Below are positions 11,840-42,965 of a stretch of DNA of 64,000 bases, piece after piece; the first letter of the stretch is position 1, and the number at the start of each line of letters is the position of its first letter. Source of the stretch: Epithemia pelagica (lineage: Eukaryota; Protista; Bacillariophyta); assembly GCA_946965045.2 (NCBI GenBank), contig OX337236.1, positions 1,550,001-1,614,000 on the forward strand, written 5' to 3'. The position numbers were made by a program, and so were the translations under genes. The notes beneath the pieces were generated by a model, which was not told where the DNA came from, searched no databases, and saw only the letters and a list, made by a program, of their open reading frames with translations.

Positions 11840-11859
11840 CTAACGCCCAGGGTCTGGAA
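11840..11859 (+). repeat. hAT left TSD (CTAACGCC) and left TIR (CAGGGTCTGGAA)
   Basis: Read directly; matches the right end. Confidence 0.95.
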
Positions 11860-12341
11860 GTCATTTTATGTGCCATCTAAACTTGAATGTAGATTGATTA
11901 TTCACTTTTCCAATCAGTTTAGAATTAAATTAAGAATTAACGATTCACTTCACGACATATACACAATTGAATTAATCTTGAAAGTGTACTAATTTACGGA
12001 TAGTAAATGAACTTAATTACCAAAGTCAATTATGTTTACAATCAATAAATTCACTTAACTTTACTATTCCCCTATTTCATACCCTTTGAATTGAATTCAA
12101 TTCCCAATTCCCTTTTCGAACCAATTGGAATTAAATTCCAATCCCAATTCCCTTTTCGAACGAATTTGAATTGAATGAATCATTCTCAATTCACACCACC
12201 ATTCAGAATAAATGAATTACACATTCACCAATTCCATTCATTCTCTGAATTATGACTCACAGTCACACACTGTACTCCTTATCCTTTCTCCACCATTATA
12301 GTCGTACAACATACAACTAAGAAGATGTTAGGTACGCCTGT

Positions 12342-14399
12342 ATGTTTCAGTATCGACAAACAGCAACACACTCCTTTGTGGAACTTGTCCATATTCCTGA
12401 TGTCTTCCATCTTACACCATTGTACATCGTATACTCTCAGTCGTCACATTTTATCGTACCTATTGTCTCAATGAGCTCCCAACAATACCCAAGTAGTTGT
12501 CGCCCAACAATATCTTTGTCAAGCATATGCTCTCCTGTTGTTTCTCTCTCTCAAGCTCCACACTCATTTTTCAAATTCATTCGAGAAGAACTCCCAGACT
12601 TGTCAACCATGTCTTTTGATTTGAGAATGGAAGCAATACAAGACACCATTCTTGTTTGGCTCATTCGAGAAGATGCTTCAATTCGCTACACTTCGTGCTC
12701 TCTTGATATTCTGACAAGCCATCCATGTCAGATCAAGCCATCTCTTTCTATGGACCAATCCATCTACCTTATCTCATTACTGGTTCACCATGGTTTATAT
12801 CCCTCGCAAGAAATTCCCACCAACTTCCTGTTGAGCAACCCCAAGTTCAAAATGAGCCGGCCTAAAGATGATTTCCCAGTATTGCACCTCCACTGCAGCT
12901 GTCAACCTATATACGAAGTCAACACCGAAGACATTGGATACAAAGAAGCAATTGAATATGTATTATTGAATGGGCAAATTGATACTCAAGAAGACCTCAA
13001 TGTTCAATCGATGGAAGACTATACTCTGGAGTGGATGATACATCGTGATGCACTCATTTCTGTTTCTACATCACACAACAGAACAATTCACCCAGTCTCT
13101 ATCGATCCTCTCTTACAATGCATTGCTACATCAATGTTGTCCCAAATATCCAACAAGATTATATCCCAAGGAGATCCAACCATTCTGTCTACTCCAGTAA
13201 CTACTCCTCCAGATTCGATTGAACCTGCTAATTCCTTCCCCATTGATGGACCATCTCCACCCACATCACCATCTCAATCGACAAAACCATCTCCAGTCAA
13301 TGCAAAACACAACTCATCATCACAAGAAATCGCTGTTGCAAAGCCAAAACCTGACACTCCGACAAAGCGATCTTCTGTTGCCAAACACAGCAACCCACCA
13401 TATTCTCAGATTATGACTCGCAAACAATATGCCACCGCCGCCAACCTCCTCATTAAAGCATCCAGAGCAAGGCGACAAATCTGCTACAAAGATAAGAACA
13501 ATATTCGACACATGCCTGGTCAACCTGTTCGTTTGAAACCCAATGATCTCTCCTTGTACAACAAAACAAAAAGTTCCCCCCCCACAATATCTGAACAGAC
13601 TTTGAGAAAGAGGGTTGTCGACTTGCAGTATTTGAAAAAGCTTCATGAACATTTCCTTTCCAAAGGTCTGGAAGCTCCAAGAGACAGTTGGGAAGACTGG
13701 ATTAACGACCATCTCTCACCAGAATCCGACCGAGCCTTCATGTGCTTGGTTGTGATTCTTATGAGTTCCAACACAAGCGACAAACAATTAGCTAAAGTGG
13801 TACCCACTTTGTTCCAATGTGGGTTTGTCTCTAGTCGGGCAACCAGTGACATTGCACTCAACTATGGGATGAACGCTGTATGTTCCCTATTGGCAGAGAC
13901 TGGTCTATATTATAAGAATGCTGAGGCTATCGTCAACGCAGCAGACTACTTCATCCAACGGCATTCTGGAATTATACCAGAAACCATTACGGTGCAAGAA
14001 CTAATGTGTCTGCATGGGGTTGGGTACAAGACTGCCACAATTGTCTTGGCATTTGCATTTCAAAGAATTGACGGAATTCCAACTGATGTGCATGTACATC
14101 GCTGCTCTCGAGCCCTGGGATGGATCCCCAAATCATGCAACGACCCAGACATGTGCTCGGCTTTGTTGGAGTCTTGGATTCCAAAGGAGTACTGGGAATG
14201 GGTCAACCCAATGTTTGGAGCGCTCGGGCAACTAATACAAGACCCAAAGACACGTCACCAATGTTCAGAAATCCAGATGGATTTCACAGTCCGTCGTCTT
14301 GACAAAGACCATAAGAAGAAACTCTTAGACAGCAAAGAGATCTACAACCTACACAACAATTTCCTTCATTTGTATCGGTCCTATTGCAGTTCCTCATGA
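12342..14399 (+). CDS. Transposon cargo ORF: unknown N-terminal region plus C-terminal endonuclease III (Nth)-like HhH-GPD DNA glycosylase/AP lyase domain
   Basis: FMCLVVILMSSNTSDKQL, HhH motif LMCLHGVGYKTATIVL (Lys codon 14028), GIPTDVHVHRCSRALGW (Asp codon 14085), LESWIPKEYWEWVNPMFGALGQLI. No C-terminal 4-Cys Fe-S motif. The true start may be a downstream Met. Confidence 0.88.
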   Translation: MFQYRQTATHSFVELVHIPDVFHLTPLYIVYSQSSHFIVPIVSMSSQQYPSSCRPTISLSSICSPVVSLSQAPHSFFKFIREELPDLSTMSFDLRMEAIQDTILVWLIREDASIRYTSCSLDILTSHPCQIKPSLSMDQSIYLISLLVHHGLYPSQEIPTNFLLSNPKFKMSRPKDDFPVLHLHCSCQPIYEVNTEDIGYKEAIEYVLLNGQIDTQEDLNVQSMEDYTLEWMIHRDALISVSTSHNRTIHPVSIDPLLQCIATSMLSQISNKIISQGDPTILSTPVTTPPDSIEPANSFPIDGPSPPTSPSQSTKPSPVNAKHNSSSQEIAVAKPKPDTPTKRSSVAKHSNPPYSQIMTRKQYATAANLLIKASRARRQICYKDKNNIRHMPGQPVRLKPNDLSLYNKTKSSPPTISEQTLRKRVVDLQYLKKLHEHFLSKGLEAPRDSWEDWINDHLSPESDRAFMCLVVILMSSNTSDKQLAKVVPTLFQCGFVSSRATSDIALNYGMNAVCSLLAETGLYYKNAEAIVNAADYFIQRHSGIIPETITVQELMCLHGVGYKTATIVLAFAFQRIDGIPTDVHVHRCSRALGWIPKSCNDPDMCSALLESWIPKEYWEWVNPMFGALGQLIQDPKTRHQCSEIQMDFTVRRLDKDHKKKLLDSKEIYNLHNNFLHLYRSYCSSS

Positions 14400-14542
14400 G
14401 TCAATTTCTTATTAGTTACTATCTGTTTTTCCTTGTTTGTTCTTTTTCTTTTTGGTTCTCGCATGTATCTTGTATGTAGTCGTTCTCGTATGTAGTCGTA
14501 TGTAGTCTTTTTCGTTTTCTGTTCCGTCATGTTCTGTATTTA

Positions 14543-17500
14543 TCAGTGGTCTTCATTACTGTTATTGGTGCGGCGTCGCGGACTTGTCCTTCGTTGTTGT
14601 TGTCGTTGTTCTTCTTGCTGCTCTCCGATGTGTTCTGCAGGAGGTGGTTTCTTTGCTCTCGACGATTTGGACTTGGACTTTGTTCGAGATGCCGATTCTT
14701 GAATGGATTGTTGGCGCACTCTTTTGGAAGATGCACTCGTTTGAGTTGTTGCCTTCCTTTTTGATAAGGTGGTGGATCGTTGGGTTGTTGGTGTGGTACT
14801 GTGTGTAGCAGGAGTTGTCGTCGAAACGATTCCTGTCACACTTCCTTGAACACTTCCACTGGTACTGTTGCCTTGATCTGTCGTCGATGTAGTGGGATTC
14901 ATTGTTCGATTTGAAGATGCAGAAATACTAGAACCAGCCATCAAGTTCATTTGTTGTAGTTTGACCGCCTCAATGATGCAAGCATCACTATCTGACTGAA
15001 ATGGGTCCTTGTCTTTGCCAAGACGACCCATGCATTCCATTTGTTCCTTGTCCCCTTCGTCCACGATATCAATGAGCACTACGTCATCGAATTTTTGTAC
15101 CAAATCCAGATTAGAATCACTGCATTTGTATTCGTATTCTGAACCAACAATCCCATCGTTCCCTTCGTCTTCATCAAGTTCAATTTGTTCCCGGGCCTTG
15201 TGGTGCTTCTGCATATCTTTTACACCCTTCAAAATGGTTTTCAGACGTTTCATATGACCTTGAGTGGTCCCTTCAGCAATGGAATCCCATACCGAGACTT
15301 CATCGGTTCCCTGCTCATGTTCCTCAACAGCTTCATTTTGTTCTTCATTATCTTCGCCACTGCCGTAGTCAGTTCCATTGTTGTCTTCATCGTCATCGTC
15401 ATCAACCACGGAGATTACTTCCGCCTCTATTTCGGCCTGGGCCTCGTCTATCTCTTGGCTTGAAGCTGTTCTTTGTTGGTTCTGCAGTTGCTCCTGTGGA
15501 CTTATCTGGCGCTGTGTGGCATTACTCCTAACTTGCTCCTCGGCCTTACCCCTGGTTTGCGCTTCGTCCTCGTTCTCTGTGGTGTGTTGAGATTTCTTTT
15601 TCAGGGTCATTTCATTAACCTCAATCTCTCCACGAACCTTTCTTGTTACCATCTCCATGGTGCGAATCTCGAAATGTTTCTTGAGCTCGTTCCTCATCAA
15701 TCTATTGCTATCAAACCATGAGGAGAAAGAAAATATCCTCTCTTGGAAAGCGTTTGTAGAAGGCTTCGAGAGCCACACGAGGGCACTTGGGAAAATCATC
15801 CTGAAATTACTCTTGTTCGCCTGCCACCACTGTAAGACATCAAAATACTTGCCCACACTGTTGAAATCTTGATCATTACATGCCCGTCTGAACTTTTTCT
15901 TTTCTTGAGGCGTCCATTTTGGTGACTTTTCAGAAAAAAGAACGGTGGGATACTCCCTAATCAACGATTCCCAGGAACTGTGGATAATGCGCTGACAGTA
16001 ATCCTTGAACCCCTTGAATTCGTTGTTACATTGTTCTCTAAAGCTCTTCTTCTGCTCGTCCAACGTGTTAAGATTGTTGTTTTCCACGCACGTGCTGTCT
16101 TCATTCTCTCCATGATTCCGAAAAATATTGAACACATCGTCATCATCCGAGTCGTCGTCTTCTATATCTACAACCTCCTCATTGGCTGTCTCGGCCATTG
16201 GGGCTGGTCCATTCATTGCCAACCTTTCAGGAGTAGAAAACTTTGCTACCATGTCATCAACAAATTGTTTTTGGATTCTGGAGACGTCGTAGTCGTCGTA
16301 GATCTTGATTTTTTTCAGGATGTACGGTGCCATGTAGCAGAGAAACGGATGACCGCAGATAGCATTCTCTGCATGGACGTCGTCACCATTCATCATGTAG
16401 GTGCGAAATTCACGTAGAAGCCGGTTAATAAGCATCCGTGAGGCGGGCAGTAAATCTGCAAACTTGATATTTTTCCTTTTGGAACGGAGTTTCTCTATGG
16501 TTAACCTGGCATCCCAACGTTGGAACTCTGTGTCTAGTTCTGTGGGGTTCACAAGCAGAACAGAGACACCGTTGTCTTTGTGATATTTAATTCCATGATG
16601 GCAACCAAAGATTTCCAGCAAAGAGCCTGCAGCAGAGGAAGGATCATCTGCTTGTAAGGACATGGCGCATTTCTTGAGTGGAGAAAGAATTCCTTCGAAT
16701 TCTGCTATGGCCTGCCAGTCCTCCTTGGACAGATAATTTTCGCGGAAGTCTTTGTCTACAGAAAACTCTTGTGAATTGTAGTCATCCATGACGTACTTAT
16801 CACGTAGGAGATCATGGAATGTGAGAGCGCATCCGAGAACCCTGGTTGTGTTCGGCATACGGATCTCCACTACAACTTGGTGATTTTTTGTTGCGTAGTC
16901 CCTCAATGCCTGGAATCTCTTCTTTCTCTTTGTCATCAGGATTGAAGCTAACTTCAAGGCTTTCTTGTATGTGTCCACAAATCCGGGAAACTGGTCGATT
17001 ACCCTTCCCCCCCTTCGTCGTATAGCCAAGCCGGTGGCGTGCTTAAGAATTAATTCCGCACGATGCATATCGCACTTTCCTCCAGTCTGATTTCCCACAA
17101 TGTACTTTCCGGCAAGGACTGCCGAATTTGTATTGTCGTTTACGGAAGAGGAGAGGTCAGACTGCGTAATTCCAACGGTTGTGAGGATTTTTAGTGTGTG
17201 GGTCGCCACTTGGGCTGCTGTGTGGCCGTCTGTTTCGCAGAGACCTACGGGAATCTTGTAAAACACGCAATTCCTGGGGTCAATCAGCATTAGGCACAAT
17301 CCAAGGATGTCTTTTCGATGGCCTTGCCATATGTCATGACAAATTGTGGCGAAGGGAATTGTTTTGCCACAAATTAGCTTGTAGGCCATCCGGACATTCA
17401 GGCATAGGGAGGAAACAGTTTGGAGAAAATTGTTGTAGGAATCAAGTCGCTTGCGTATGATGGCTTTGTTGCTCATGACACAATCTTTTGTCGACAGCTT

Positions 17501-18310
17501 CTGGGCGTTAAGAATGGCGAATTCCAGCATAGCTCGGAAGGACTTCTTTTCCACTGTTGAAGTGGGTAAGCCGTTGTCGTTGACAAACTGGTAGATTGAT
17601 TGTTGAAACTTGATTCTAGCCTCGTCCTTTGACATCATGGAACCCTTGTAGGATGTCATAAGTGGTTGGTTGCTTTCTACATTGGACTTCGGTCCAATTT
17701 TTTTTTTTCGTTCCATTTCTTCTTTCACATGCGGGTGAAAAGAATCCATATGTTGGCTAACATTCGAAGAGGAGCCACTTTTCTTCTGCTTGCTGACACC
17801 ACAGAGGATGGTAGAGGCGATAAAAGACTTCTCTGGGTCTTCAAAGCAAATCGGGCACACCACAAGACGCTTACATATGGATCCCCATGACTTTTTGGGT
17901 GCTGTTTGGTCCTCTTTTGATGCTTGGTTGAGTACAGCAAAGCATCGAGAAATACCTTCCATTTTGCTAACTTCTTTGGTGTCAAGTCTTGCTTGTAATT
18001 CTGTTAACTGGCAAAAGTCCAAGTGTCTCACTGTTCCCCAGTAGGTATTCAGATTCTTGAAATGCTCTCTCGGTGGACTTTTGAGGAAGGGGACATAGTC
18101 TTTCTCTTTCTTGATTTCTTGATGAATTGCTTCGGTTCGTTGGGCTTGGGTAGGGTGTTGCCTATTCTGTTGATTGTTGTTCCCTTGGGGGGCTAAAGCA
18201 GCGGGTGGGTTCTCGTCTTGCTGTGCAGGTGGAGGGTCTGGGTTCTCTGCTTGTGTGGGATGAGCCGGGGGTGTCTCCTCTTGTTCTGCCATCGTCGGTT
18301 GTGTTGACAT
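14543..18310 (-). CDS. hAT transposase (open frame extends to 18475)
   Basis: BED-like Zn finger (CPIC..HMDSFH), catalytic CHDIW, VNDNT and FQERIFS, CxxH motif KCDMH, hATC dimerisation domain DVLQWWQ..FPSALVWLSKPSTNAFQERIFS; uninterrupted reading frame. Confidence 0.93.
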   Translation of the reverse strand: MSTQPTMAEQEETPPAHPTQAENPDPPPAQQDENPPAALAPQGNNNQQNRQHPTQAQRTEAIHQEIKKEKDYVPFLKSPPREHFKNLNTYWGTVRHLDFCQLTELQARLDTKEVSKMEGISRCFAVLNQASKEDQTAPKKSWGSICKRLVVCPICFEDPEKSFIASTILCGVSKQKKSGSSSNVSQHMDSFHPHVKEEMERKKKIGPKSNVESNQPLMTSYKGSMMSKDEARIKFQQSIYQFVNDNGLPTSTVEKKSFRAMLEFAILNAQKLSTKDCVMSNKAIIRKRLDSYNNFLQTVSSLCLNVRMAYKLICGKTIPFATICHDIWQGHRKDILGLCLMLIDPRNCVFYKIPVGLCETDGHTAAQVATHTLKILTTVGITQSDLSSSVNDNTNSAVLAGKYIVGNQTGGKCDMHRAELILKHATGLAIRRRGGRVIDQFPGFVDTYKKALKLASILMTKRKKRFQALRDYATKNHQVVVEIRMPNTTRVLGCALTFHDLLRDKYVMDDYNSQEFSVDKDFRENYLSKEDWQAIAEFEGILSPLKKCAMSLQADDPSSAAGSLLEIFGCHHGIKYHKDNGVSVLLVNPTELDTEFQRWDARLTIEKLRSKRKNIKFADLLPASRMLINRLLREFRTYMMNGDDVHAENAICGHPFLCYMAPYILKKIKIYDDYDVSRIQKQFVDDMVAKFSTPERLAMNGPAPMAETANEEVVDIEDDDSDDDDVFNIFRNHGENEDSTCVENNNLNTLDEQKKSFREQCNNEFKGFKDYCQRIIHSSWESLIREYPTVLFSEKSPKWTPQEKKKFRRACNDQDFNSVGKYFDVLQWWQANKSNFRMIFPSALVWLSKPSTNAFQERIFSFSSWFDSNRLMRNELKKHFEIRTMEMVTRKVRGEIEVNEMTLKKKSQHTTENEDEAQTRGKAEEQVRSNATQRQISPQEQLQNQQRTASSQEIDEAQAEIEAEVISVVDDDDDEDNNGTDYGSGEDNEEQNEAVEEHEQGTDEVSVWDSIAEGTTQGHMKRLKTILKGVKDMQKHHKAREQIELDEDEGNDGIVGSEYEYKCSDSNLDLVQKFDDVVLIDIVDEGDKEQMECMGRLGKDKDPFQSDSDACIIEAVKLQQMNLMAGSSISASSNRTMNPTTSTTDQGNSTSGSVQGSVTGIVSTTTPATHSTTPTTQRSTTLSKRKATTQTSASSKRVRQQSIQESASRTKSKSKSSRAKKPPPAEHIGEQQEEQRQQQRRTSPRRRTNNSNEDH

Positions 18311-18909
18311 GATGGTAGATCCAGACAGGGTGGACAAGGATGCTGGGCTTTGAAGATGATTAAGAGGCACAATCAAGCCAGACACCATGTGTTGCAAGTT
18401 GCAAGCTGCAACATACAATGAACTGTTGAAGGATTGGTGGATGGACGGTAGAGGTGAGAGGTAAGAGAGTGTCACAAGTCACAAAGATGAGGCGGTTGAA
18501 GGTAGGGTCACTGTGTGATATTGTATAGAAACGTAATTCACATGACACATTGGGGGGAGAATGGTAATTCCATCTGTGCGTAGGAGAAAATTGATTGGAT
18601 TCTCAAATTCTTATAGTGAGTAAGAAGGAATTGGATTGGATTGGGAATTGATATCGTCTGATAAAGTGAATTGAAGGGAATTGGGAAGTGTCTATTTTAG
18701 AGAATTGGGAATTGAATTAGGGAATTGACATTCCCCGTCTGAGATGATGAGACTTGAATCGGAATAGTGAATCCAAGAAAAAATCGGTATTGAGTTGAGT
18801 GGATTGTGAAATTCAATGAAAGTAAAGGAGGAGGATTTCAATTGAATGGCTTAATTCAAGCTAAATTTAAGTTACATTCCCTAAAGTCATTAAAGTCCCA
18901 CTTTTTGAA

Positions 18910-18929
18910 TTCCAGACCCTGCTAACGCC
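18910..18929 (+). repeat. hAT right TIR (TTCCAGACCCTG) and right TSD (CTAACGCC)
   Basis: Read directly; matches the left end. Confidence 0.95.
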
Positions 18930-19480
18930 GTCCTTACGCATTCGCAAAACAAATCCAAAAGACCGCGCCTGTCCCCCATCCTGTCCCCCATCCTCCCCCA
19001 CTCTTCACTTAGAAAAATTGAATACTAAAACTTTTGGTACCAGGGAAGCGACCTTTTACGCAAGAATACCGTTAGAGTCGAACGCCCGTCCATCATGTCG
19101 AACGCCCGCCTGACATATTCGAAACTGAAGGCTGGCCTCTACACTAGCATAAGTAAAACACTATCCCTAATGAATTTCCTGGATTTGTTCGAACAAATCC
19201 AGAGTTCTGGATTGGTTGGAACAAATCCGGAAATGCTCTTTTACCCGGATATGTGACGTCAACGTGACGCAAAATGCTGACGTGCACGAAATTTTGATTT
19301 GGTTTTGCGAGCTAAAGGATTGGCAAAGTCCAAACCACGGTCCGCGATTTGTGGGCAGTGGGCAGTGGGCAGTGGGCAGCACTCTATTATTGCTTGTGTT
19401 GCAATCAAAAGAGGTCCTGGTTGTCAATGGGAAGTCCAAGAAACCAATAACATCTTCATCTGCGTACTCAAATCATCACC

Positions 19481-21936: not shown

Positions 21937-22235
21937 TAGCAATCTGAAGGTACCGTTAGGGAACAATCTGATCCTCCACTAGAGAGTAGTTCATGAACCA
22001 TTTGTCCTATTAAATGATAGTATTGCCTCAACTGACGGCAAAAAATCCCTCGATCTCATGTATTTCTGAGTAATTTCGATACTGTTCGTGCCTCAGCCGA
22101 TCACTGCAGGGATGTCCGCCATATCTTATCGTGCGCGCAAGAAACCTGGGGAAGCTGTCTCTTCCTACTAGAGCGCTCGTCGAACGAAGTGTGACTCCAT
22201 GCAAAAATCGCCCACGACTATTTTGATGTTTACAA

Positions 22236-25696: not shown

Positions 25697-25843
25697 CCGC
25701 ATGGTACAGCGACCAACCCTCTGTCTGTTATTCGCCCGTGCCGCTTTGCGGGTGGACAACGGCGACGATCATTCCCGAAGTGTACCCTCCCACGACACCC
25801 CGACCGGTCCTACACACCGACGGCGGCCAAATAGTAATGAAAG

Positions 25844-31322: not shown

Positions 31323-32103
31323 TGTCACGGATGGAATGTTTTGAACTGTTGGAAGATATGAGCAACGGATTGGATCGAACCAGTGTTAGATTTATGACAA
31401 TATCTTGTTTGTGCAATGTCACGCAAAAGAGCCAACGGCAGCCAAAGCAAGATCGCAAGTTTTCGTGGCTCCGAGGTTACCTACCTACGGCAACTTGTCT
31501 TTTTGAGCTCCTTTGATGTGTGTCTCGCTCGTCGACGAGATTGCTTGTCGTCGATTTCCTCTGCGCAAGTTACAAGTAATGGTGTCTTGGACGCAACCAA
31601 GACATTTTGGAATACAACTCTGACGTTGCTACTCCTCTTCGTTTTCCCCCCATGCCGAAACTTCCGTCATCTCAACACGAAGTTTGCAAGAATCTTGGTC
31701 GCCCGAACAAATCGGTCACACAACCCATCATCTCCATATCCTCTTTGCTGTTTCGGTTATTCGATTTTCTATGAATGAATCACCACTCGATATTTCGTCA
31801 GCCTCTTGGTATTGTTGTCACGCGCGTCACAGATCCCATGATTGCTGAGACATGGACCGAAAGATTTTTCGTATTCAGTTCTCAAGAGTATATCGCCGGT
31901 CTCGGTATGAAGAATAGACGCGCGATTACACGTCACGTGACGCGGCAACGCGCAAAATACGTAAGAAATACGAGTAATAGACTCCGTACGAAAATGCAAT
32001 TGCGTTTGCGTTCTCCCTTTCTTTCTTTTTCGCGTTCCGATTTCGCTTTTCGGCTTTGACGAGTCAGTTCCACTGTACAGATTTCTGTATTCTGTTCTAC
32101 TCG

Positions 32104-32133
32104 TACAAGCTGGTTCGAGACGAAACCTGCATG
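32104..32133 (+). repeat. Left TA TSD and 28-bp TIR of the large Tc1/mariner-type element
   Basis: TA+CAAGCTGGTTCGAGACGAAACCTGCATG read directly. Confidence 0.93.
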
Positions 32134-32450
32134 GCCTAAATAGTGTCGGAAAAACTAACAATAAAGTAGGACTACACTTTAGCCGACAGTTTCCTAGCGT
32201 TCTGGTTTGCCTTCGGGTTTTTAGGTTACGAGCTTGCCCTCACATTTTGTCACGCATTTCATTCAAAAAGCAAATATCGATAACGATTAGTGACCGCTTC
32301 CCATGACGATGGCCGTCGTAGGCCCTTCGATGCGACACCACCCCTCCAGACTTTTAGTATAGGTGTAATATAACAATGCTAGAACGGTGGTGTCGCATCA
32401 AACGACCTGCATCTCGTGTTATACCAGTAGTTACTAGCTAGTAGTGCTTT

Positions 32451-34554
32451 GCAACCTGAAACAACAGCAGCCGAAGACGAAGAAGAAGAAGAGAGTCGCC
32501 GTCATCCTCCCAACCCTTGCAACCTGAGACAACAGCAGCCGAAGACGAAGAAAAAGAGAGTCGCTGTCATCCTCCCAACCCTTGCAACCTGAAACAACAG
32601 CAGCCGAAGAAGAAGAAGAAGAAGAAGAAGAAGAAGAAGAAGAAGAAGAAGAAGAAGAAGAAGAAGAAGAAGAAGAAAAAGAAGAAAAAGAAGAAAAAGA
32701 AGAAAAAGAAGAAAAAGAAGAAAAAGAAGAAGAAGAAGAAGAAGAAGACGAGAGTCGCCGCCATGCTCCCAACCCTTCTTGCAACCTGACACAACAGCAG
32801 CCAAAGAAGAAGAAGACGAGAGTCGCCATCATCCTCCCAACCCTTCTTGCAACCTGAAACAACAGCAGCCGAAGAAGAAGAAGAAGAGAGTCGCCGTCAT
32901 CCTCCCAATCCTTGCAACCTGAAACAACAGCAGCCGAAGAAGAAGAAGAAGAGAGTCGCCGTCATCCTCCCAACCCTTGCAACCTGAAACAACAGCAGCC
33001 GAAGAAGAAGAAGAAGAAAAAGAAGAAGAGAGTCGCCGTCATCCTCCCAACCCTTGCAACCTGAAACAACAGCAGCCGAAGAAGAAGAAGAAGAAGACGA
33101 GAGTCGCCATCATCCTCCCAACCCTTGCAACCTGAAACAACAGCAGCCGAAGAAGAAGAAGAAGAAGAAGAGAATCGCCGTCATCCTCCCAACCCTTGCA
33201 ACCTGAAACAACAGCAGCCGAAGACGAAGAAGAAGAAGAGAGTCGCCGTCATCCTCCCAACCCTTGCAACCTGAAACAACAGCAGCCGAAGACGAAGAAG
33301 AAGAAGACGAGAGTCGCCATCATCCTCCCAACCCTTGCAACCTGAAACAACAGCAGCCAAAGAAGAAGAAGAAGAAAAAGAAGAAGACGAGAGTCGCCGT
33401 CATCCTCCAAACCCTTGCAACCTGAAACAACAGCAGCCGAAGAAGAAGAAGAAGAAGACGAGAGTCGCCGTCATCCTCCCAACCCTTGCAACCTGAAACA
33501 ACAGCAGCCGAAGAAGAAGAAGAAGAAGAAGAAGAAGACGAGAGTCGCCGTCATCCTCCCAACCCTTGCAACCTGAAACAACAGCAGCCGAAGAAGAAGA
33601 AGAAGAAAAAGAAGAAGAGAGTCGCCGTCATCCTCCCAACCCTTGCAACCTGAAACAACAGCAGCCGAAGAAGAAGAAGAAGAAGAAGAAGAAGACGAGA
33701 GTCGCCGTCATCCTCCCAACCCTTGCAACCTGAAACAACAGCAGCCGAAGAAGAAGAAGAAGAAGAAGAGAATCGCCGTCATCCTCCCAACCCTTGCAAC
33801 CTGAAACAACAGCAGCCGAAGACGAAGAAGAAGAAGAGAGTCGCCGTCATCCTCCCAACCCTTGCAACCTGAAACAACAGCAGCCGAAGACGAAGAAGAA
33901 GAAGACGAGAGTCGCCATCATCCTCCCAACCCTTGCAACCTGAAACAACAGCAGCCAAAGAAGAAGAAGAAGAAAAAGAAGAAGAAGAGAGTCGCCGCCA
34001 TCCTCCCAACCCTTCTTGCGACCTGAAACAACAGCAGCCGAAGAAGAAGAAGACGAGAGTCGCCGTCATCCTCCCAACCCTTGCAACCTGAAACAACAGC
34101 AGCCGAAGAAGAAGAAGAAGAAGAAGAAGAAGAAGAAGAAGACGAGAGTCGCCGTCATCCTCCCAACCCTTGCAACCTGAAACAACAGCAGCCGAAGAAG
34201 AAGAAGAAGAAGAAGAAGAAGAAGACGAGAGTCGCCGTCATCCTCCCAACCCTTGCAACCTGAAACAACAGCAGCCGAAGAAGAAGAAGAGAATCGCCGT
34301 CATCCTCCCAACCCTTGCAACCTGAAACAACAGCAGCCGAAGGAGAAGAAGAACTGTCATCTTGTATCATTGCCGATCACCTCGTCTTTCCCCAGCAGCA
34401 GTAGCATTAACCACAACTACCTATAGTACAACAACTGCAAGAGTCGCCGTCATCCTCCCAACCCTTGCAGCCATCATCATCGTCATCCTCTGGAAGAACA
34501 GCAGCCAAAGAAGAAGAAGAGAGTCGCCGTCATCCTCCCAACCCTTGCAACAAC

Positions 34555-34605
<51 letters not shown>

Positions 34606-34640
34606 CTGAAACAACAGCAGCCGAAGAAGAAGAAGAACTG
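32451..34640 (+). repeat. Compound minisatellite: constant ~50-bp unit interrupted by a variable (GAA)n tract; ~25 units plus 2 degenerate copies
   Basis: Unit GCAACCTGAAACAACAGCAGCC-(GAA)n-GAGAGTCGCCGTCATCCTCCCAACCCTT, counted by hand; longest GAA/GAAAAA tract at ~32605-32748. Confidence 0.97.
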
Positions 34641-34709
34641 TCGTCTCGTATCATTGTCGATCACCTCGTCCATCTCCTCGTCTGTCTCGTTCGCTGTGTC
34701 GTCAACACG

Positions 34710-37700
34710 ATGAAAGATCCTCCATCAAAGAAGCTTTACGACAAGGTTATCCAGGAATTCGCGCATCGCGTCACTCCGAGTGGCTTTCCATGGAGAGGCA
34801 ATTGGATCGTTGATGAGCAGATTGCATTATTCTTGGCGCAATGGGTACCCGACCTAAAAAGTGCGTACGAGCTCAACCAAGCTCTGATGCGTTCAGCCTC
34901 ATTGAAAATTTTACTTCAGCAGAAGTCACGCAACGAAAAGGGTGTCTATCGATTTCAATTTCGGTGCCGTGAAGGAAGGAAGTGTTTCTATTTTGTCGCA
35001 TCAAACGATGAACCACCCAACTTCAAACATACTGCTGATGAGTGGAAGGCCTTTGCGTCCACGATATACTATCGAGCAAGCTCACGGAACAGGAACAAAC
35101 GGAAAAACCAAGCCACACCATCCAAAGATGATGATACCATTTCGACGTGTAGCGAAACAGTCGTCACGACACCAACAGATGCATCCAGTCATGTTGAACA
35201 TGGCGACAGAGTACCAAGCCCAGGAAGTCTATCAAACGAAAGTATCCCGGAGAACAACAGCAACAGTGATGATACGAACAATGGTTCCAGCAATCAAACA
35301 AATTTCTCGTCTATCCAGCATGTTGTTGCGATGGGTGTCTGCAATTTCTTTGGTGGAAGACGAGGACATGGTGGTGAATTAACAAGAGACAAGTTGGAGA
35401 GATGGATCAAAAGCCTTCTCGAAGCTGAGAACTCGTATGACAAGATGATGCGTATGGTGAACAAGGCAAACGAAGAACCTCCACCACGAGCCTGGATCCC
35501 AAAGATCCTGACAAAAGCTCGTATGCTCCGACGGGCGTATCAGCTTGCGCTGCAAACGATGGAGGCAGGTGCAACATGGGGTTCATGCTGTGATACGGTC
35601 ATCGCTGAGTTCAGACACACGAATGCTAACTTATCAGTTTTGCGCAATTCTCGGACACTGCAAGAATGGAATATACAGTTCCGAACGCGGGAAGGCTTCC
35701 CTCATCCGAGCCCATATGTTGAGAGAGGCAAAAGACCGTGCCCCTTCCTTTTTGAAATATTTCCTGAAGCCCTTAAAACCTTTCAAGATTGGGCAAGCAA
35801 GCGCCTTGAAGAACTGTCCTGTGAACTGGCGGCTGGCTACATCAGGGCGCAACTGATCCCGGCAATATATGAGAAGGAGCGTGCTAACCGTCGGGAGCAG
35901 GATCGTGTGCTCACTCTGGATGAATTTAGGTCTTCAATCAGGATGACAACTGTTTCATTTTCCACAGCTTCAAGAATCCTAAGCTTTGCTGGTTTCCGCT
36001 TCTCCGACACCAAGAAGACCTATTACAACGATCGGCATGAGCACCCAGAAAACGTGGACTTTGAGGTGGAAAAACTTGCGCACCGGTGGGTCCAGATTCC
36101 AGTCGAAGAGGCAATCAGACTCGAGAATTGCGACAGTGCTTCGCGTCTCATGAAAGATGTCTGGGCGTTTGAGTTCACCGACCCAAAGAACAACAAACGA
36201 ATGCGCGAATACCACATCGATTGTTTCCCAGAAGTCTTCTTTGAGTACGTCAAAGAAGAGAACAAGCCTTTTGGGGGGAACTTGTCGCACAAATTCCCCA
36301 GCACTGATCGTCGCCCTGTCATGATCATTGGCCAAGATGAAGCCGTCTTCAAGCAGTGGTCATTTTCCAAGAAGTCGTGGCATGACCACAGAGGGCGTGG
36401 ATTACTTTTACCGAAAGATGATGGACATGGCATCATGCTAAGTGCATTTGTCGGTCGAGTTTGGGGATTCTACTTGGACAATGAGGGTGAAGTTTCCATG
36501 CTCACTCGGGATGTGATTGCGGAGATCAACAATGCACGGAGAGATCAGGTGTACTTGGCCAAGGACTCAGCACAAAAAGTTCTTGGCGGTTGCGCGAAGC
36601 GACTACAACAAATTACGGACGCAAGCCCTTTCTGCACATTTTTTGACTACGGTACAAATAACGATGGCTATTGGACCTACGACACAATGGCATTGCAACT
36701 CGAGGACTTAGTTGATTGTTTGAAAGTCCTTTTCCCAGACTTTGACTTTGTCTTTCTTTTTGATCACAGCAGCAATCACGGAAAGAAACAGCAAGATGGC
36801 CTCAATGAGAAAGGGATGAATATAGATTGGGGCGGTGCAGTGGCAAAGATGCATGATACCGTTGTTGAGTCTGTTGGGCCATTCACGCACCCACACTGCC
36901 TTCAACCTGGGTCGACACAATGCATGATCTACACGGAAGAGGATCGTGGTCCTTTCTCGTACAAGCAGTCTCCGCTCACAGATGAGCAGCGAGAAACTAT
37001 GAAGTATGATCGTGTGAACCCAGATGAAACAAAGAAACACAATATCACCAAACAAGAACTGGTGAATCAGCTGGTTCAGAACGAAATTGCACAAGGAGCT
37101 CATTTCGGTGATCGAGACGTCCAAGCCTACCTATCGAAGTCCTTTTCTCAGCTCCAAGGTATGTCAAGAGCAAAAGAACTTCCCGTGGAGGAGCAGCGAC
37201 CTGTGATGGAGCAGGGATGGCTTGGGCAACCAAAGGGTCTGATGCAAGTGCTGTGGGAGCGCGGGTTCATTGACCCGGCAAACGCCAAGAAGTACGTCAA
37301 GGACAAGCGTGCAGCGTGGTTAGATGAGACAGGCAAGGAGGTCCGAGACGACAAGATCGCAGAGTACCAAAAGTATTCCCTGACTTACCTCATGGGAAAA
37401 TGCGAGGACTTCAAGGAAGAGAAGTCAGCACTGGAACAGCTTGCAGCAGATCTCTCGACCCGATACAATAGGATGATTAGAATCATGGCATCAACCAAGT
37501 TCCACTGCGAGTTTGCTGGCGAAGGAATAGAATATGGCTGGGGCTTTGCAAAAAGAGTGTTCCGAAGCATGAAGAGGTTGGAGAAAGACTCAAAAGACAA
37601 CTTCGTGTCGTGTGTGCGAAAGAGTATTGACAAAGTCTCGTTGAGCACAATGCGTAAGTTTGGAGCAAAAGCACGGCGGTACATGCTAACGTACCACTTG

Positions 37701-37865
37701 TTTGACAATCACAGAACAGATGCAATGTTTGAAAGTGATGGTCTATCATACGCAGAGATTGAAAAGTATGTCGATCGAACGATGAAGACCCATCGTTGCA
37801 CTCTTGATCAGGAGCATTCATTCATTCAGAAAGCCTGGAAAGAGTCACAAGAAGCTGAACGATGA
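34710..37865 (+). CDS. IS630/Tc1/mariner-related DDE transposase (long D-E spacing); frame is open from 34362 through degenerate repeats
   Basis: YYNDRHEH, IGQDEAVF (D at 36336), FLFDHSSNH (D at 36762), GWLGQPKGLMQVLWERG, TKFHCEFAGEGIEYGWGFAKR (E at 37530). Confidence 0.88.
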   Translation: MKDPPSKKLYDKVIQEFAHRVTPSGFPWRGNWIVDEQIALFLAQWVPDLKSAYELNQALMRSASLKILLQQKSRNEKGVYRFQFRCREGRKCFYFVASNDEPPNFKHTADEWKAFASTIYYRASSRNRNKRKNQATPSKDDDTISTCSETVVTTPTDASSHVEHGDRVPSPGSLSNESIPENNSNSDDTNNGSSNQTNFSSIQHVVAMGVCNFFGGRRGHGGELTRDKLERWIKSLLEAENSYDKMMRMVNKANEEPPPRAWIPKILTKARMLRRAYQLALQTMEAGATWGSCCDTVIAEFRHTNANLSVLRNSRTLQEWNIQFRTREGFPHPSPYVERGKRPCPFLFEIFPEALKTFQDWASKRLEELSCELAAGYIRAQLIPAIYEKERANRREQDRVLTLDEFRSSIRMTTVSFSTASRILSFAGFRFSDTKKTYYNDRHEHPENVDFEVEKLAHRWVQIPVEEAIRLENCDSASRLMKDVWAFEFTDPKNNKRMREYHIDCFPEVFFEYVKEENKPFGGNLSHKFPSTDRRPVMIIGQDEAVFKQWSFSKKSWHDHRGRGLLLPKDDGHGIMLSAFVGRVWGFYLDNEGEVSMLTRDVIAEINNARRDQVYLAKDSAQKVLGGCAKRLQQITDASPFCTFFDYGTNNDGYWTYDTMALQLEDLVDCLKVLFPDFDFVFLFDHSSNHGKKQQDGLNEKGMNIDWGGAVAKMHDTVVESVGPFTHPHCLQPGSTQCMIYTEEDRGPFSYKQSPLTDEQRETMKYDRVNPDETKKHNITKQELVNQLVQNEIAQGAHFGDRDVQAYLSKSFSQLQGMSRAKELPVEEQRPVMEQGWLGQPKGLMQVLWERGFIDPANAKKYVKDKRAAWLDETGKEVRDDKIAEYQKYSLTYLMGKCEDFKEEKSALEQLAADLSTRYNRMIRIMASTKFHCEFAGEGIEYGWGFAKRVFRSMKRLEKDSKDNFVSCVRKSIDKVSLSTMRKFGAKARRYMLTYHLFDNHRTDAMFESDGLSYAEIEKYVDRTMKTHRCTLDQEHSFIQKAWKESQEAER

Positions 37866-38048
37866 AACCAAGACTATATAGATAAATATCATAGCGTTGT
37901 TTTATCTGCATGAACTACTACTAGACAACAAGACTTTCACCTGATCTATAAAAGGAAACCTTGGACAACGCGGGACATTGAGGTTCTGGCTAAAATATCA
38001 AAATGGTGCTGTACAGTATATACTGGAAAATAGCTTAGTCATTCTCAT

Positions 38049-38130
38049 TTCTGTATGGTATAGTGGTAGAGCGCCACCATGACGGTGAACCCGTCAGCAG
38101 GAGGTCAGGGGATCGATTCCCTCAGGCAAC
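38049..38130 (+). other. tRNA-like sequence with Pol III A and B boxes (tRNA pseudogene or SINE head)
   Basis: A box TGGTATAGTGG 38056-38066 followed by TAGAGCG, B box GGATCGATTCC 38110-38120 in a T-arm-like context, internal hairpin TGACGG-TGAAC-CCGTCA. Acceptor and D stems pair poorly, so not a functional tRNA. Confidence 0.55.
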
Positions 38131-38455
38131 TTTAAGTTCAAGATCCCCGATTCTCGGTGGGCCGCCATATTTGGGGTTTATGGTACAAGACGTTTCCCCG
38201 CTGTCGAGAGAGTCCCCCCTTCATCAGATTTGCGTACAGCAGCCGGCCGCTTGGTCCTTGTGTATAGACACTCAGGGACCCACCTCCTCCGTTGCGCACA
38301 TCATTCTTTTGTGTCGGCTGATAAACTAGTCAAATGTGCTTATTCAATTGGGGTTTGAGACAATTATAATTTTATCTACTCCGGTCTCTAATCCCTAGTT
38401 CCGGATGAAAAGTTATTCAGTCATCACGATTAGGCTGACGTTCGTGGTTATTTCT

Positions 38456-39700
38456 TCAGCATCGAGGTTCATCCGGTTCACTATTGCTTGCTGTTCGATT
38501 CTCATCCTCACCAACATTGGAGGAAGACGGCTTCTCCGGATGGGGCCTCTCCATCTCCGTCGGTTTCTGTAATGGTACCCTCCACGAGTTCGGCTTCTGC
38601 TTCTTCCTCATCATCGTCCTCGTCGACTCTTTCCGTACTGTAGGTATTCTCCGATGGATGCACTTCATTAGATTGCCAGTTCCGAGCTGGTACCAGCTGT
38701 GGATCTCACACGGTGGGTTGTTTTCAGTTGCGTTTTCCTCGACCCGTTTGTTCGGGTGACTCAACTTCTTGGCCCGTCCATGTATTGGACAGTTTGGACA
38801 GCTCCAAATTGCGTTTCTTGTTGCTGCTGTTGTTGTTATTTGTAGTACTGCGTAATGACAAATCCATCGGTTGGTTGTCATCTTCGGATGCTTCGTCCGA
38901 TGCACTCCTTGGTTTGGAATCCACCACAACAACAGGCGCATCTTTGTTTGAGTTTGTAGTCTCGGTTGCGTCCACTTCCATGGATTCCGTATCGTTTGAC
39001 TGTTTCTCTGTACTAGGTTGTTGTTGTGATTTGGGAGTGTCCACATCCATTGATTCCACAGGATCCGACTGTTTCTCTGTAATGGTTTGTATCAATCAAG
39101 CGTTGTTGGACAATCGTACCCGACTCAGAATCCAAGACAAATTCCGATTGCAAGGCCAATTGCAGTGGAAACGACGACGACGACGATGGATTGCTGGCAC
39201 TGTCCTGATTCATTGTACCAAAGGGCAATGGTGTCCCCAACCACGAGGGTGCGGGAGGCAATCCGGGAGGTGTCAAGACGACACGCAAATTCAAGATCAA
39301 GCGATATCGTATGGTACCACGATCCGTCCATTCCACACGCGTCGTGACGGGTTGTTCTTGTGATTGTTTCGGTCGGCTGGATTGGAGGTTGCTGCCGACG
39401 ACGACGATGCAAAGACCAATCGTCCACTTTGCAAGTTCGACTGCAATTGACCAATCCAAAACCCGACAACTTGTGCGTAGGGCGATTTACCTCGAACCAG
39501 GCCAGCATAGACATCGGTAGCCTGTTGCGGCGGATTGGCCGTTTGGGACGACAATTCATTGACATCATTGGCCCCACAATTGTATTGATTGTAATAATCC
39601 GAGTGATAGAGTCGACCATCTTGGTTGTTGTCGTCGTCAACACGAATTTGAGGATGTGAATGAATGAGGCCACAAAAACTGATTCCAATACCAATCGCTC
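38456..39700 (-). pseudogene. Frameshifted, apparently chimeric protein-coding fragments inside the transposon
   Basis: Protein-like segments in different frames (DGRLYHSDYY..AQVVGFW; VEWTDRGTIRYRLILNL..LQSEFVLDSESGTIVQQRL; TEKQSDPVESMDVD; ERVDEDDEEEAEAE) with no continuous ORF or clear introns. Confidence 0.4.
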
Positions 39701-39861
39701 CCAGACATCCCCATCACAGAAAATTTTTCATTTCGAGAAATTGACGCTTACGAGGAGTATTTTTTGGCGCGTGGTAGACTTCAGAGAACCTATTCTAGCT
39801 TAAAATAAAGAAAAAAGAAATGTCCCATTCTTGCGGATATTGAATCTGTCAATCAACCACG

Positions 39862-40953
39862 ATGGTAGCAACGCGCAGCAGTTCCGTTCCAAAGGGAAAG
39901 AGGCCTACTACGGCCATGGCAAACGACAACAAGGGACGACAGAAACCTTCAGCTGTCAAGGTTGCAAGGCAGAGCAAGCCGCCACCTCCAGCATCGTCGA
40001 AGTTGAAACCTCCTGCAGCATCGTCGACGACACCACAAGTTGACAAGGAGGAGGTGGAAGCGCTATCCAATTTGAAATGGTTGCAACTGCAGCCGAATCG
40101 ATTATACTCAACAAAGCCGAAGGAAGTGAGGGAACGCTACCGAAAGCAACAACAAAAAGCGCAAGTTCCCAAGAATGCTGTGACGCCATCCAAGCTCATG
40201 AGGAAGCTGGACGCGCTCTGCAACGGCACTCCAGCAGGAAGGGAGGCGATGCAACAATACATCGCAAAACACATAAAACATGTCGTCAATATACAGGGTG
40301 CCACTGTGAGAAAGGGTCCTACCCCCAAAAATTCTCGCAGCAAGGGCGAGTTCAAGCCAGTTGGTACGTGTCTCCAACCGTCCAACAAAATCAAGAACGA
40401 GAAACGTTGCAAGGGGAAGAATGTGAAGAAGAAGAAGAATCTTGTCTTCTCCGGTACCTACATGATTGATCTGAACGATAAGAACAATCAACACTACGAG
40501 GCCTTTGTCCGCTACAAGGACTATTGCGGAGACATGGTGACCGGTTTGAAGAAAAGGCATTCGGAGTATGCCATCAGGACAAGAGGCAAGACGCCTGTCA
40601 CGTTTGAGGCTTCGCCCGCGGATCTATGGATGGGCCTTCACTTCCTCAATGATCCCAACTTTGCACTGTATGGGACAGGCCAGAAGGTTGATGGGGAGAA
40701 CAGCCAATACAATGTCACCATTGATGGAAATCTCAAGGTGACGGCCTTGCGCGATATAAGAAAAAACGAAGAGCTGTTCCTTTTCTACAACCTGGACGGC
40801 AACGACAAGGACGAGGATGACCACGACAAGGACGAGGATGACCACGAGGACGAGGATGACCACGAGGACGAGGAAGACGACGAGGACGACGAGGACAAGG
40901 ATGACCACGAGGACGAGGAAGACGACGAGGACGACGAGGACGAGGATATCTGA
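39862..40953 (+). CDS. Transposon cargo: divergent SET-domain protein with basic N-terminus and D/E/H-repeat acidic tail
   Basis: WMGLHFLNDP..YNVTIDGNLKVTALRDIRKNEELFLFYN matches the SET C-terminal motifs (F.NH-type, A.RDI..GEEL..DY); intronless intact ORF. Confidence 0.7.
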   Translation: MVATRSSSVPKGKRPTTAMANDNKGRQKPSAVKVARQSKPPPPASSKLKPPAASSTTPQVDKEEVEALSNLKWLQLQPNRLYSTKPKEVRERYRKQQQKAQVPKNAVTPSKLMRKLDALCNGTPAGREAMQQYIAKHIKHVVNIQGATVRKGPTPKNSRSKGEFKPVGTCLQPSNKIKNEKRCKGKNVKKKKNLVFSGTYMIDLNDKNNQHYEAFVRYKDYCGDMVTGLKKRHSEYAIRTRGKTPVTFEASPADLWMGLHFLNDPNFALYGTGQKVDGENSQYNVTIDGNLKVTALRDIRKNEELFLFYNLDGNDKDEDDHDKDEDDHEDEDDHEDEEDDEDDEDKDDHEDEEDDEDDEDEDI

Positions 40954-41030
40954 GCTGCTACAAATGAACTTACGAGTAGAATCATATGTCTTACTATAAA
41001 TACTACTACTACTTACTGTTTCTTGTGTCG

Positions 41031-41907
41031 TTAGTCAAAGTAGTAGTCCTGACTGAAACCGCAGTCCTGCGTTTCTTCGAAGCCATCGTCAATAAATGAA
41101 TCGACCGTCGCGTCGTCATCCATGTCATCATCCACGAGGCCTTGGCGCTCCGAAGTTAGACACTGGGGCGGTGACGGCTTGTATACCAAACCTCCAGCCT
41201 CATACTTCACGTGATTCTCCGCTTGGAGACGATAGATCGCATGCTTCTCACCCGGGGTCATGGCGACCCAAGTCTTGTTGGACGCCATGGCCGTCGCTTC
41301 CGACAGCGGTGCCGAAGTCACCGTATTGGTCTTGGAGGGCGTTGCATGTGGTTTCGAGGGCGTTTTCTCGTGAAAAGAAACAACTTCAAAAGCAAGCAAT
41401 GTCAGATATTTCTGTGCGATTCGTCCAAACAGTTTTCGGCATACCTTGTTGTTTCTTGTCTCTTTCGTTCGCGTCAATATAGTCCTTCTTGTCGTTGCGA
41501 GTGCCATTTGTACTAGCATCAGTATCGTTGAGTGCCTGGACAATATCGGCAAAGGAGATTTTGCCTGCTTTGTTGTGTTTACGGCAGATGGCAAGCCTGG
41601 TCGTCCCATTCTCATCACTGAGAATGAGCTGCCACTGCGTTGCCTCCGCCAGAGCAGCCTTAAACTTCTCCTCCTTGTCATTTGCTCCGATTGGAGCAAA
41701 TGTCTTGATTGAAGGCGTCGGTGACTTGGACGGCTTCTTCGGCGTGTTCGACGTCTTCGCCTTTTTATTTGGCGTCTTTCTGGGTGTCTTGCGCGGCGCT
41801 TCCACAGCCGAGTTCTCCGGAATCCCATCCATTGGATGGGCCGAAAGCATCGCGCGTCGAGCGGCCCGGGCAGCTCGGTCACTGGTGGGGGCAGCGGTGG
41901 TTGTCAT
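41031..41907 (-). CDS. Transposon cargo: basic protein with a partial HMG-box-like helix, 2 exons
   Basis: GT-AG intron 41384-41444 joins ORFs 41386-41991 and 41031-41882 in frame. KTWVAMTPGEKHAIYRLQAENHVKYE resembles HMG-box helix 3 (W..LS.EEK..Y...A....Y); K/TP-rich N-terminus. Confidence 0.55.
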
Positions 41908-42223
41908 CGTTATCGTCGCACTTGTCGTTTTCACAAGTTTGTGGGGTTTTGCTCTCGCAAGTTTGTGGGACAAAAATGGCGTGAGAGGCATAGATGAAGA
42001 GTGGGCATGCTCGGATTGAACGACTGAACATACTCGCAGTACTTAGGCCAACGGATCGCCGTACTTAGGCCAACGGATCCATGGTGCGCGCAAGATATCC
42101 CCAACCCGTGAGATGGTGCCACTTTTTGGAGCCATCCGCAAACGAAACGCAAATTGAATCAAACACACGACAATCAAACAGTGCCAACAGCACAGAGCAC
42201 CGCCCACTTACAAGGATCTTACC

Positions 42224-42721
42224 ATGGAGGGAGTAGACTTCTTTTTCAACCAGGAGTTGGCCGATGGCGACGTCGAAAACGGTGCTGTTGGGTTTCGCAC
42301 GTCGTTCTACGCCCGGCGGGTAAATGTTCTCCTTGCTCCTATCACCGAGGAGCATGGCGAAAGCGGCCGGAATGTTGTTGACCGTGGGCATGTCCTCCTA
42401 CAGCGGGAGGTCGCCACGGACTACCTACGCTTAGCCTTCTACAAGAGGGAAGCTCGGACGGAGCATTCCGATCCATTGGTTGTGCTTCCCGTTGGCTTCA
42501 TTGCTAAGATTGCAATGAAGAAAGCCGCTTCGCCTACAGATAGTGAAAAGAAGAAGGGACGGATTCGATTCTATACGCGGTGTTTGATCGACACGAAGAT
42601 GTGCATGGATCCGATGGTGGTCACAGTGTACATGGAGATCGCGGACATGCACCATCTCCACGCTACACTTGGCTCTATGACGACGAAATTCCCCAATCAG
42701 AAGCTCTTATTTGATGTCTAG
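42224..42721 (+). CDS. Transposon cargo: orphan 165-aa globular protein (weak PH-fold-like pattern)
   Basis: ATG-initiated intact ORF with natural composition, alternating hydrophobic strands and a C-terminal helix; family not recognised. Confidence 0.5.
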   Translation: MEGVDFFFNQELADGDVENGAVGFRTSFYARRVNVLLAPITEEHGESGRNVVDRGHVLLQREVATDYLRLAFYKREARTEHSDPLVVLPVGFIAKIAMKKAASPTDSEKKKGRIRFYTRCLIDTKMCMDPMVVTVYMEIADMHHLHATLGSMTTKFPNQKLLFDV

Positions 42722-42931
42722 ACTAACAACTATATACAGGTGAATGGTTACCGACCACAGGTCTTGCCTATAGAGCCATTAAGGGCATCATTTTCGACGT
42801 TGTATCAGAGTTTTGCCATGGCCATGGCGTCGTCTCCACAAAAGGAAGGGGGCCTATATCGCGACTATAGATTTTTGTGTAGGAATGCCACGTGAGCGTG
42901 TCAGTACAGAATTTTTTCACTCTAATATTCT

Positions 42932-42961
42932 CATGCAGGTTTCGTCTCGAACCAGCTTGTA
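42932..42961 (+). repeat. Right 28-bp TIR and TA TSD of the large Tc1/mariner-type element
   Basis: CATGCAGGTTTCGTCTCGAACCAGCTTG+TA is the exact reverse complement of 32104-32133. Confidence 0.93.
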
Positions 42962-42965
42962 GCTA

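Follow-up and report, generated by a model that had tools for sequence, protein, structure and literature searches.

Two unrelated DNA-transposon lineages of a diatom with old, selectively kept enzyme genes: an endonuclease III-like glycosylase in a hAT clade and a SET-domain gene in a TA-flanked family

Are the enzyme genes carried by two neighbouring transposons of the diatom Epithemia pelagica accidental cargo, or have the transposon lineages kept them, and if so, for what use? The window analysed here, 64,000 nucleotides of contig OX337236.1 (assembly GCA_946965045.2, positions 1,550,001 to 1,614,000 of the forward strand), contains a hAT element with a gene for an HhH-GPD glycosylase and, about 13 kb away, a second, TA-flanked element with a SET-like gene, below called element B. 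We describe both structures as cut-and-paste transposons with several genes, among them an enzyme gene that is old, is kept by selection and would benefit the element epigenetically. Taken as a whole, this statement is an even call, and its two parts differ in strength. That these are old enzyme genes of two unrelated transposon lineages, kept by selection, we hold with high confidence; the epigenetic role of the enzymes is tentative, with the balance tilted against it. The data demonstrate two independent old acquisitions of enzymes of the DNA- or chromatin-modification type by unrelated DNA-transposon lineages.

The hAT element, its target-site duplication and its two genes are the following (positions here and below are those of the window).

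11848–18921, plus strand: complete hAT transposon, 7074 bp, with inverted ends, a duplication and two long convergent frames
11840–11847, no strand: left target-site duplication, 8 bp, CTAACGCC, an octamer matching the right copy perfectly
18922–18929, no strand: right target-site duplication, 8 bp, CTAACGCC, matching the left copy
12342–14399, plus strand: glycosylase gene, 685 amino acids; two N-terminal repeats, then the HhH-GPD domain at about 13647–14270
14543–18475, minus strand: hAT transposase gene, 1310 amino acids, convergent with the glycosylase gene, with matches to Dimer_Tnp_hAT and Hermes

The inverted ends, 11848–11859 and 18910–18921, read CAGGGTCTGGAA and its complement; they start with CAG and are complementary at 12 of 12 positions. 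Subterminal repeats of the form AATTCCC/GGGAATT are found near 12090–12160 and 18630–18720. The transposase of the window scores 21.4 bits against Pfam Dimer_Tnp_hAT (PF05699), exactly the cut-off, and the same domain is above the cut-off (24–31 bits) in all seven diverged relatives. Its sole PDB match is Hermes, and this match is confined to the C-terminal region. The 8-bp duplication, the CAG inverted ends and the C-terminal dimerisation domain confirm that the element is a hAT transposon, and the sequence-only reading, which had described here a hAT element with an HhH-GPD glycosylase, intact frames, clean inverted ends and a duplication, is thus borne out.

In the assembly searched (60.5 Mb, 23 contigs), nine full-length copies and one truncated left end are 95–100% identical to the window element, and the flanking DNA is unrelated at all ten left ends. 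The nine full-length copies diverge from their own consensus by 0.45–0.70%, and both frames are open in three or four of them. The family is young and recently active. In a young copy at G000 C3:4152560-4167995, about 8.4 kb of inserted DNA interrupts the transposase gene.

The 685-residue product of the glycosylase gene matches Pfam HhH-GPD (E 5.6e-8) and human NTHL1 (E 3e-19). It also matches NCBIfam nth (E 5e-23, 81.8 bits), but does not reach the equivalog cut-off of 211.7. In an alignment of 18 glycosylase sequences, K563, the lysine of the helix-hairpin-helix, and D582 are invariant; a Lys and Asp pair provides the catalytic residues of bifunctional glycosylase/apurinic-apyrimidinic (AP) lyases. 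None of the 18 sequences shows, downstream of the GxxGQ motif, a conserved cysteine pattern corresponding to the four-cysteine [4Fe-4S] loop. The loop for the iron–sulphur (Fe-S) cluster is common to Nth, MutY and DME/ROS1. The AlphaFold (AF2) model has pLDDT 73, and the best match in a VIA fold search is NTHL1 (Z 19.0), other matches being EndoIII (16.8), the T:G glycosylase Mig (15.5), MutY (15.4), ROS1 (11.8) and MBD4 (10.2). The N-terminal 300 residues form, in the same model, two repeats with a confidently predicted fold, for which no match was found in Pfam, Atlas or VIA. Judged by these profiles and the model, the hAT-borne enzyme appears to be an endonuclease III-like, NTHL1-like HhH-GPD glycosylase without the Fe-S cluster. 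An affinity to DME/ROS1 was considered and rejected, given the Z score of 11.8 for ROS1 vs 19.0 for NTHL1 and the missing Fe-S cysteines. Comparison of the glycosylase profile with 1.84 billion representative proteins yielded 43 at E <= 1e-30, followed by ordinary Nth proteins, and the best 150 matches include no protein longer than 800 amino acids. Of the database members of the family, those looked up derive for the most part from large ENA contigs, probably of this species, and a few from short environmental contigs.

Is the glycosylase a chance companion of one young family? A six-frame search of the genome with the catalytic domain of the glycosylase gave 96 matches at about 90 loci, with amino acid identities of 46–100%, and the frames that hold them are mostly open, 600–690 amino acids long. 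The sole locus resembling the host's own Nth is distant, with 31% identity to the hAT glycosylase. A search with the core of the hAT transposase gave at least 78 matches (68 of 141 candidates scored). The glycosylase and the transposase are adjacent and convergent in 18 out of 19 diverged loci examined; the exception, L018, has a 682-residue glycosylase frame, followed by 4.6 kb in which no transposase is present. Trees of the glycosylase catalytic domain and of the transposase core, constructed for a sample of 16 elements, have 12 of 13 splits in common (random mean 0.28, maximum 3), and the patristic distances in the two trees are correlated with Mantel r = 0.82, a value equalled in none of 5000 permutations. 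The dN/dS ratio of the glycosylase is 0.11–0.20 in comparisons with unsaturated synonymous sites. Given the linkage, the common splits and the low dN/dS, we conclude that there was one old acquisition, kept by selection: a hAT clade, now diversified, gained an endonuclease III-type glycosylase gene once, and the gene has been co-inherited with the transposase since.

Several hAT loci have other arrangements. Three derivatives (L013, L025, L027) have large internal deletions in the transposase, but their glycosylase frame, 600–627 amino acids long, is still open. The hAT relative L030 (G000 C2:5833000-5842999) encodes a transposase of 1235 amino acids, 40% identical, and no glycosylase; the position of the latter is occupied by a low-complexity frame of 460 amino acids, unrelated to the glycosylase. 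A twin copy of L030 is situated at C7:1338190. Since such relatives without the glycosylase exist, hAT transposition does not as a rule require the enzyme.

The second transposon, with the two genes discussed next, is arranged as follows.

32104–42961, plus strand: element B, a TA-flanked transposon of 10,858 bp with perfect inverted ends of 30 nucleotides
34362–37865, plus strand: transposase frame, 1167 amino acids from stop to stop; the probable start at 34710 yields the protein P0005 of 1051 amino acids
39862–40953, plus strand: SET-like gene, 363 amino acids, the tail made of acidic repeats; 32 residues are deleted in frame, with the junction near 40525

The inverted ends, 32104–32133 and 42932–42961, are 30 nucleotides long counting the terminal TA, which is found at both tips. 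In a 1.3-kb derivative (L034), which shares the ends of element B, both tips carry TA; in a short copy (L035), the one end read carries it as well. The TA may be either a target duplication or a terminal TA of the element. At full length, element B is the sole copy of its own sub-lineage in the genome.

The transposase has 212 homologues, including those from the diatom Fragilaria crotonensis and from many marine metagenome contigs, and no Pfam domain is found among them except SAP in some. The family (P0005–P0124), with proteins of about 1000 amino acids, is widespread in diatoms and marine metagenomes. The transposase itself has no match in Pfam, NCBIfam or PDB, the last searched also with a profile of 22 sequences. 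The only positive hint is the similarity of Atlas language-model features to those of DDE_3 clusters (0.89–0.91); Bacillariophyta is the commonest taxon in the Atlas cluster that the transposase resembles. The invariant acidic candidates in P0005 are D543, D685 and E934/E941, with spacings of about 142 and 250 residues, while the catalytic triad of Tc1/mariner transposases has the spacing DD(34–41)E/D. The earlier description of element B as Tc1/mariner-type agrees with the TA at the tips and the inverted ends, but finds no profile or structure match and has acidic residues too far apart; on the DDE_3-like features, this assignment can serve as a lead only. The family may be a transposase group that is undescribed or not modelled. 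That element B is unrelated to hAT can be stated safely.

The SET-like frame of 363 amino acids appeared to be unique at the DNA level, and a word-based search with the protein from the window found no relative; at the protein level, relatives were found beside the transposase. All relatives examined, six copies from one sub-family and 14 from another, have the SET gene next to the transposase. The SET-like domain is found at about 60 genome loci altogether; apart from these two sub-families, a group of about 39 loci holds a C-terminal SET-like segment, which in 12 of them is situated 2.3–2.6 kb downstream of transposase-like DNA. Hence the statement that the window offered one example of each cargo was too modest, both for SET and, with about 90 loci, for the glycosylase. 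Pfam SET matches all eight aligned family members at E <= 0.01 (best 5.8e-6), and the best PDB match of the family profile is the SET domain of EZH2 (E 5e-7), those of MLL and NSD being far weaker. The catalytic Tyr309 in the motif ELFLxYN is invariant, no further domains flank the minimal SET domain of the protein, and dN/dS between the sub-families is 0.12. Several sub-families of this TA-inserting family share the arrangement of a minimal SET-domain gene next to the transposase.

The SET frame of the window itself scores 18 bits against Pfam SET, under the cut-off of 22.4, and is matched only in its C-terminal third, because the 32 residues lost belong to the SET-N segment. This segment (NAGLGAFAA...GE..GYY) is present in all seven aligned relatives, and the window copy is, to judge from its frame, probably inactive. 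Of the earlier claims about the second element, that of clean inverted ends stands, and the transposase frame is open, whereas the cargo is open and not intact; an additional HMG-like cargo was rejected, as no frame of element B has an HMG-box match even at E <= 10.

A distant sub-family (G000 C1:5120177-5123231 and about 11 similar loci) has the SET-like segment in a frame of 971 amino acids, which seems to extend to the second catalytic motif of the transposase, 2.3 kb upstream. This frame may be a transposase–SET fusion. No such fusion was found among the 120 predicted homologues of the element B transposase.

What use would the elements have for these enzymes? We suggest that each would act on the DNA or chromatin of its own element, to the benefit of the latter. 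The glycosylase would flip out a modified cytosine, that is, 5-methylcytosine (5mC) or a product of its oxidation or deamination, and then excise it by means of Lys563 and Asp582, after which base-excision repair of the host would put back an unmodified C, so that the element would carry less methylation or suffer less CpG decay. Targeting would fall to the two N-terminal repeats. The SET protein would methylate a histone-tail lysine on the element or close to it. In plants, demethylation proceeds through glycosylases. The genome encodes C5-DNA-methyltransferase (DNMT) domains, which counts towards counter-silencing, and in Phaeodactylum tricornutum methylation is depleted and young transposons are de-repressed once DNMT5a is lost (PMC9998398). 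We consider counter-silencing by base excision doubtful. In its most specific form, the hAT-borne enzyme would be a cluster-less demethylase derived from Nth, targeted by its N-terminal domain to 5mC or 5mC derivatives in its own element, and this seems somewhat unlikely. As for the convergent recruitment proposed by the sequence-only reading, the part that stands is that two unrelated lineages keep such enzymes under selection, as seen from the co-phylogeny, dN/dS and conservation across sub-families; counter-silencing would be one possible use of them.

A number of observations weigh against this explanation. The CpG observed/expected ratio is 0.66 in the hAT element and 0.92 in the rest of the window, and among the nine hAT copies transitions affect seven of 80 CpG sites compared to 21 of 725 other C/G sites, about a threefold excess per site based on only seven events. 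The excess points in the direction of methylated DNA, the numbers being small. Because of the CpG depletion and the excess of CpG transitions, the hAT copies do not look shielded from methylation-linked decay. The modelled fold places the glycosylase closer to NTHL1, EndoIII and Mig than to ROS1, and the enzyme would have no Fe-S cluster. No complete termini of the diverged hAT sub-families were found within the 10-kb loci examined. On the side of element B, the SET-N segment missing from the window copy includes the GxG cofactor-binding motif, and the position of the NH motif reads ND (GLHFANDPN) in all eight family sequences. SET enzymes add methyl marks and do not erase repressive ones, and EZH2 is a repressive writer; a SET writer with EZH2 as the best profile match would fit repression as well as activation.

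Alternatively, the enzymes might act in transposition or break repair rather than on the epigenetic state: at donor or target sites, the glycosylase/AP-lyase would nick or process DNA, and the SET protein would mark the chromatin of breaks, aiding end joining. This agrees with the repair-type, NTHL1-like character of the glycosylase with both bifunctional catalytic residues, and with the linkage and co-evolution of both enzyme genes with the transposase; the SET part of SETMAR has been reported to mark chromatin at breaks, aiding end joining (PMC2847698). However, glycosylase-less hAT relatives such as L030 keep long open transposase frames. Moreover, we know of no cut-and-paste mechanism that uses a glycosylase, and such a service is unlikely. 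The glycosylase might also protect the sequence of the element and not its expression, by removing T or U opposite G once cytosine, methylated or plain, has been deaminated, in the manner of Mig and MBD4, and thus slowing the mutational decay of the copies. The structural matches of the AF2 model to Mig, a thermostable T:G glycosylase, and to MBD4, as well as the DNMT domains in the host genome, would be in line with this, but the CpG depletion and the excess of CpG transitions persist in the hAT family. Mig and MBD4, further, do not have the catalytic lysine that is invariant in the hAT glycosylase. Such protection of the sequence is quite unlikely.

For the SET protein, it is conceivable that it writes a repressive mark, and so limits its own element or silences host genes or rival elements. 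EZH2 as the best PDB profile match far ahead of MLL and NSD, and the minimal SET domain with nothing flanking it, speak in favour of this, and the chlorella-virus SET protein (vSET) acts repressively on host chromatin; still, matches so distant do not fix the substrate specificity, and we regard a repressive writer as very unlikely. Finally, the enzyme genes could be host genes captured passively, without a role for the element, like the cargo of Pack-MULEs. Element B does hold captured fragments, at 38102–39638. However, passive capture of the enzyme genes is hardly credible in view of the 12 of 13 common splits, dN/dS of 0.1–0.2, frames that are open across 31–60% amino acid divergence in dozens of copies, and the only host-like Nth locus being just 31% identical; for both enzyme genes, random capture is rejected by the co-phylogeny and dN/dS.

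The closest parallel is found in fungi, where TET/JBP genes are carried by eleven transposon lineages, a hAT group among them; the carriers include Kyakuja-Dileera-Zisupton, hAT7, Harbinger, IS3EU, EnSpm, Plavaka and Helitron (PMC12730594). The diatom elements resemble these in having a second gene for an enzyme of the modified-cytosine type, in the involvement of a hAT lineage, in many copies and in several superfamilies. Unlike them, the enzyme is an HhH-GPD base-excision glycosylase and not a dioxygenase, and the host is a diatom and not a fungus. In addition, the fungal TET genes have moved between superfamilies, whereas the glycosylase has co-diverged with a single hAT clade.

As to the SET gene, HarbingerS and MuDR elements of Phytophthora encode a SET histone methyltransferase, according to Repbase Reports 2014 as cited in PMC12730594. 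Going by that citation, these are likewise stramenopile DNA transposons with a SET-domain gene beside the transposase; element B, compared with them by description only, differs in being TA-flanked, with a transposase of about 1000 amino acids without a Pfam domain. In SETMAR/Metnase (PMC2847698), too, a SET domain and a TA-type transposase go together, but SETMAR is a domesticated primate host gene formed by fusion, whereas here SET is a separate gene within mobile copies.

Anti-silencing has been demonstrated for VANC of the Arabidopsis VANDAL (MuDR) elements, which lowers the methylation of its own family (cited in PMC12730594). VANC is the functional model for the counter-silencing reading, which here is only proposed; it belongs to no known enzyme class and has no similarity to the hAT glycosylase or the SET protein.

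Plant DEMETER/ROS1 share with the hAT enzyme the HhH-GPD fold and the catalytic Lys and Asp, but they have an Fe-S cluster, a split catalytic domain and extra C-terminal domains and are host genes, whereas the hAT enzyme seems to be cluster-less and is transposon-borne. To our knowledge, DEMETER/ROS1 provide the only glycosylase route to active demethylation, and few cases are known of transposons that bring tools of their own against silencing by the host, namely plant VANC, fungal TET/JBP and oomycete SET.

The idea of transposons carrying epigenetic enzymes has already been published, and to that extent the novelty claimed in the sequence-only reading is reduced. What is new, by the literature searched, is the glycosylase-carrying hAT: the full-text literature, outside of which are most subscription journals and Repbase Reports, yielded no report of an HhH-GPD glycosylase encoded by a transposon, and none of diatom DNA transposons with a SET gene. 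A large hAT clade, young and intact, with a glycosylase kept through deep divergence adds an enzyme class, and an ecologically important algal group, to these systems. If the element does own a base-excision demethylase, active demethylation by glycosylases would have arisen a second time, independently and outside plants, and this would be the first such demethylase belonging to a mobile element; if 5mC is what the glycosylase removes, it would be a compact demethylase without an Fe-S cluster, possibly a useful tool.

The spacing of about 13 kb between the two elements is probably a coincidence. With about 90 glycosylase-bearing hAT loci spread uniformly over 60.5 Mb, the chance that a given site has one no more than 13 kb away is about 4%, and transposons tend to cluster.

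The remaining features of element B are listed below.

32449–34352, no strand: subterminal tandem array, GAA-rich, with units of 71, 83 and 151 bp, between the left end and the transposase
38102–39638, no strand: patchwork insert, present only in the window copy; a dispersed repeat and three fragments
41031–41991, minus strand: conserved gene in two frames (intron or frameshift), with 37–45% amino acid identity to minus-strand frames of the relatives B1 and B2
42224–42721, plus strand: conserved frame of 165 amino acids near the right end, with 63–67% amino acid identity in relatives and DNA matches in more than 20 copies

Arrays related to the tandem array are found in relatives at C9:2321579, C13:213026 and C4:2192611. 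The patchwork insert starts with a repeat of about 100 bp, which has at least 11 genomic copies, followed by three fragments each matching a single locus: 82% identity to C9:228378, 89% to C10:75386 and 87% to C4:227977. Judging from these matches, it looks like a transduplication of host or other DNA, that is, a real but passive capture. Neither the gene at 41031–41991 nor the frame at 42224–42721 has a Pfam match.

A foldback element of 616 bp (42961–43576), with inverted ends of 64 nucleotides that are 97% complementary, begins exactly at the final base of the right end of element B. Probably, one of the two inserted beside or into the other.

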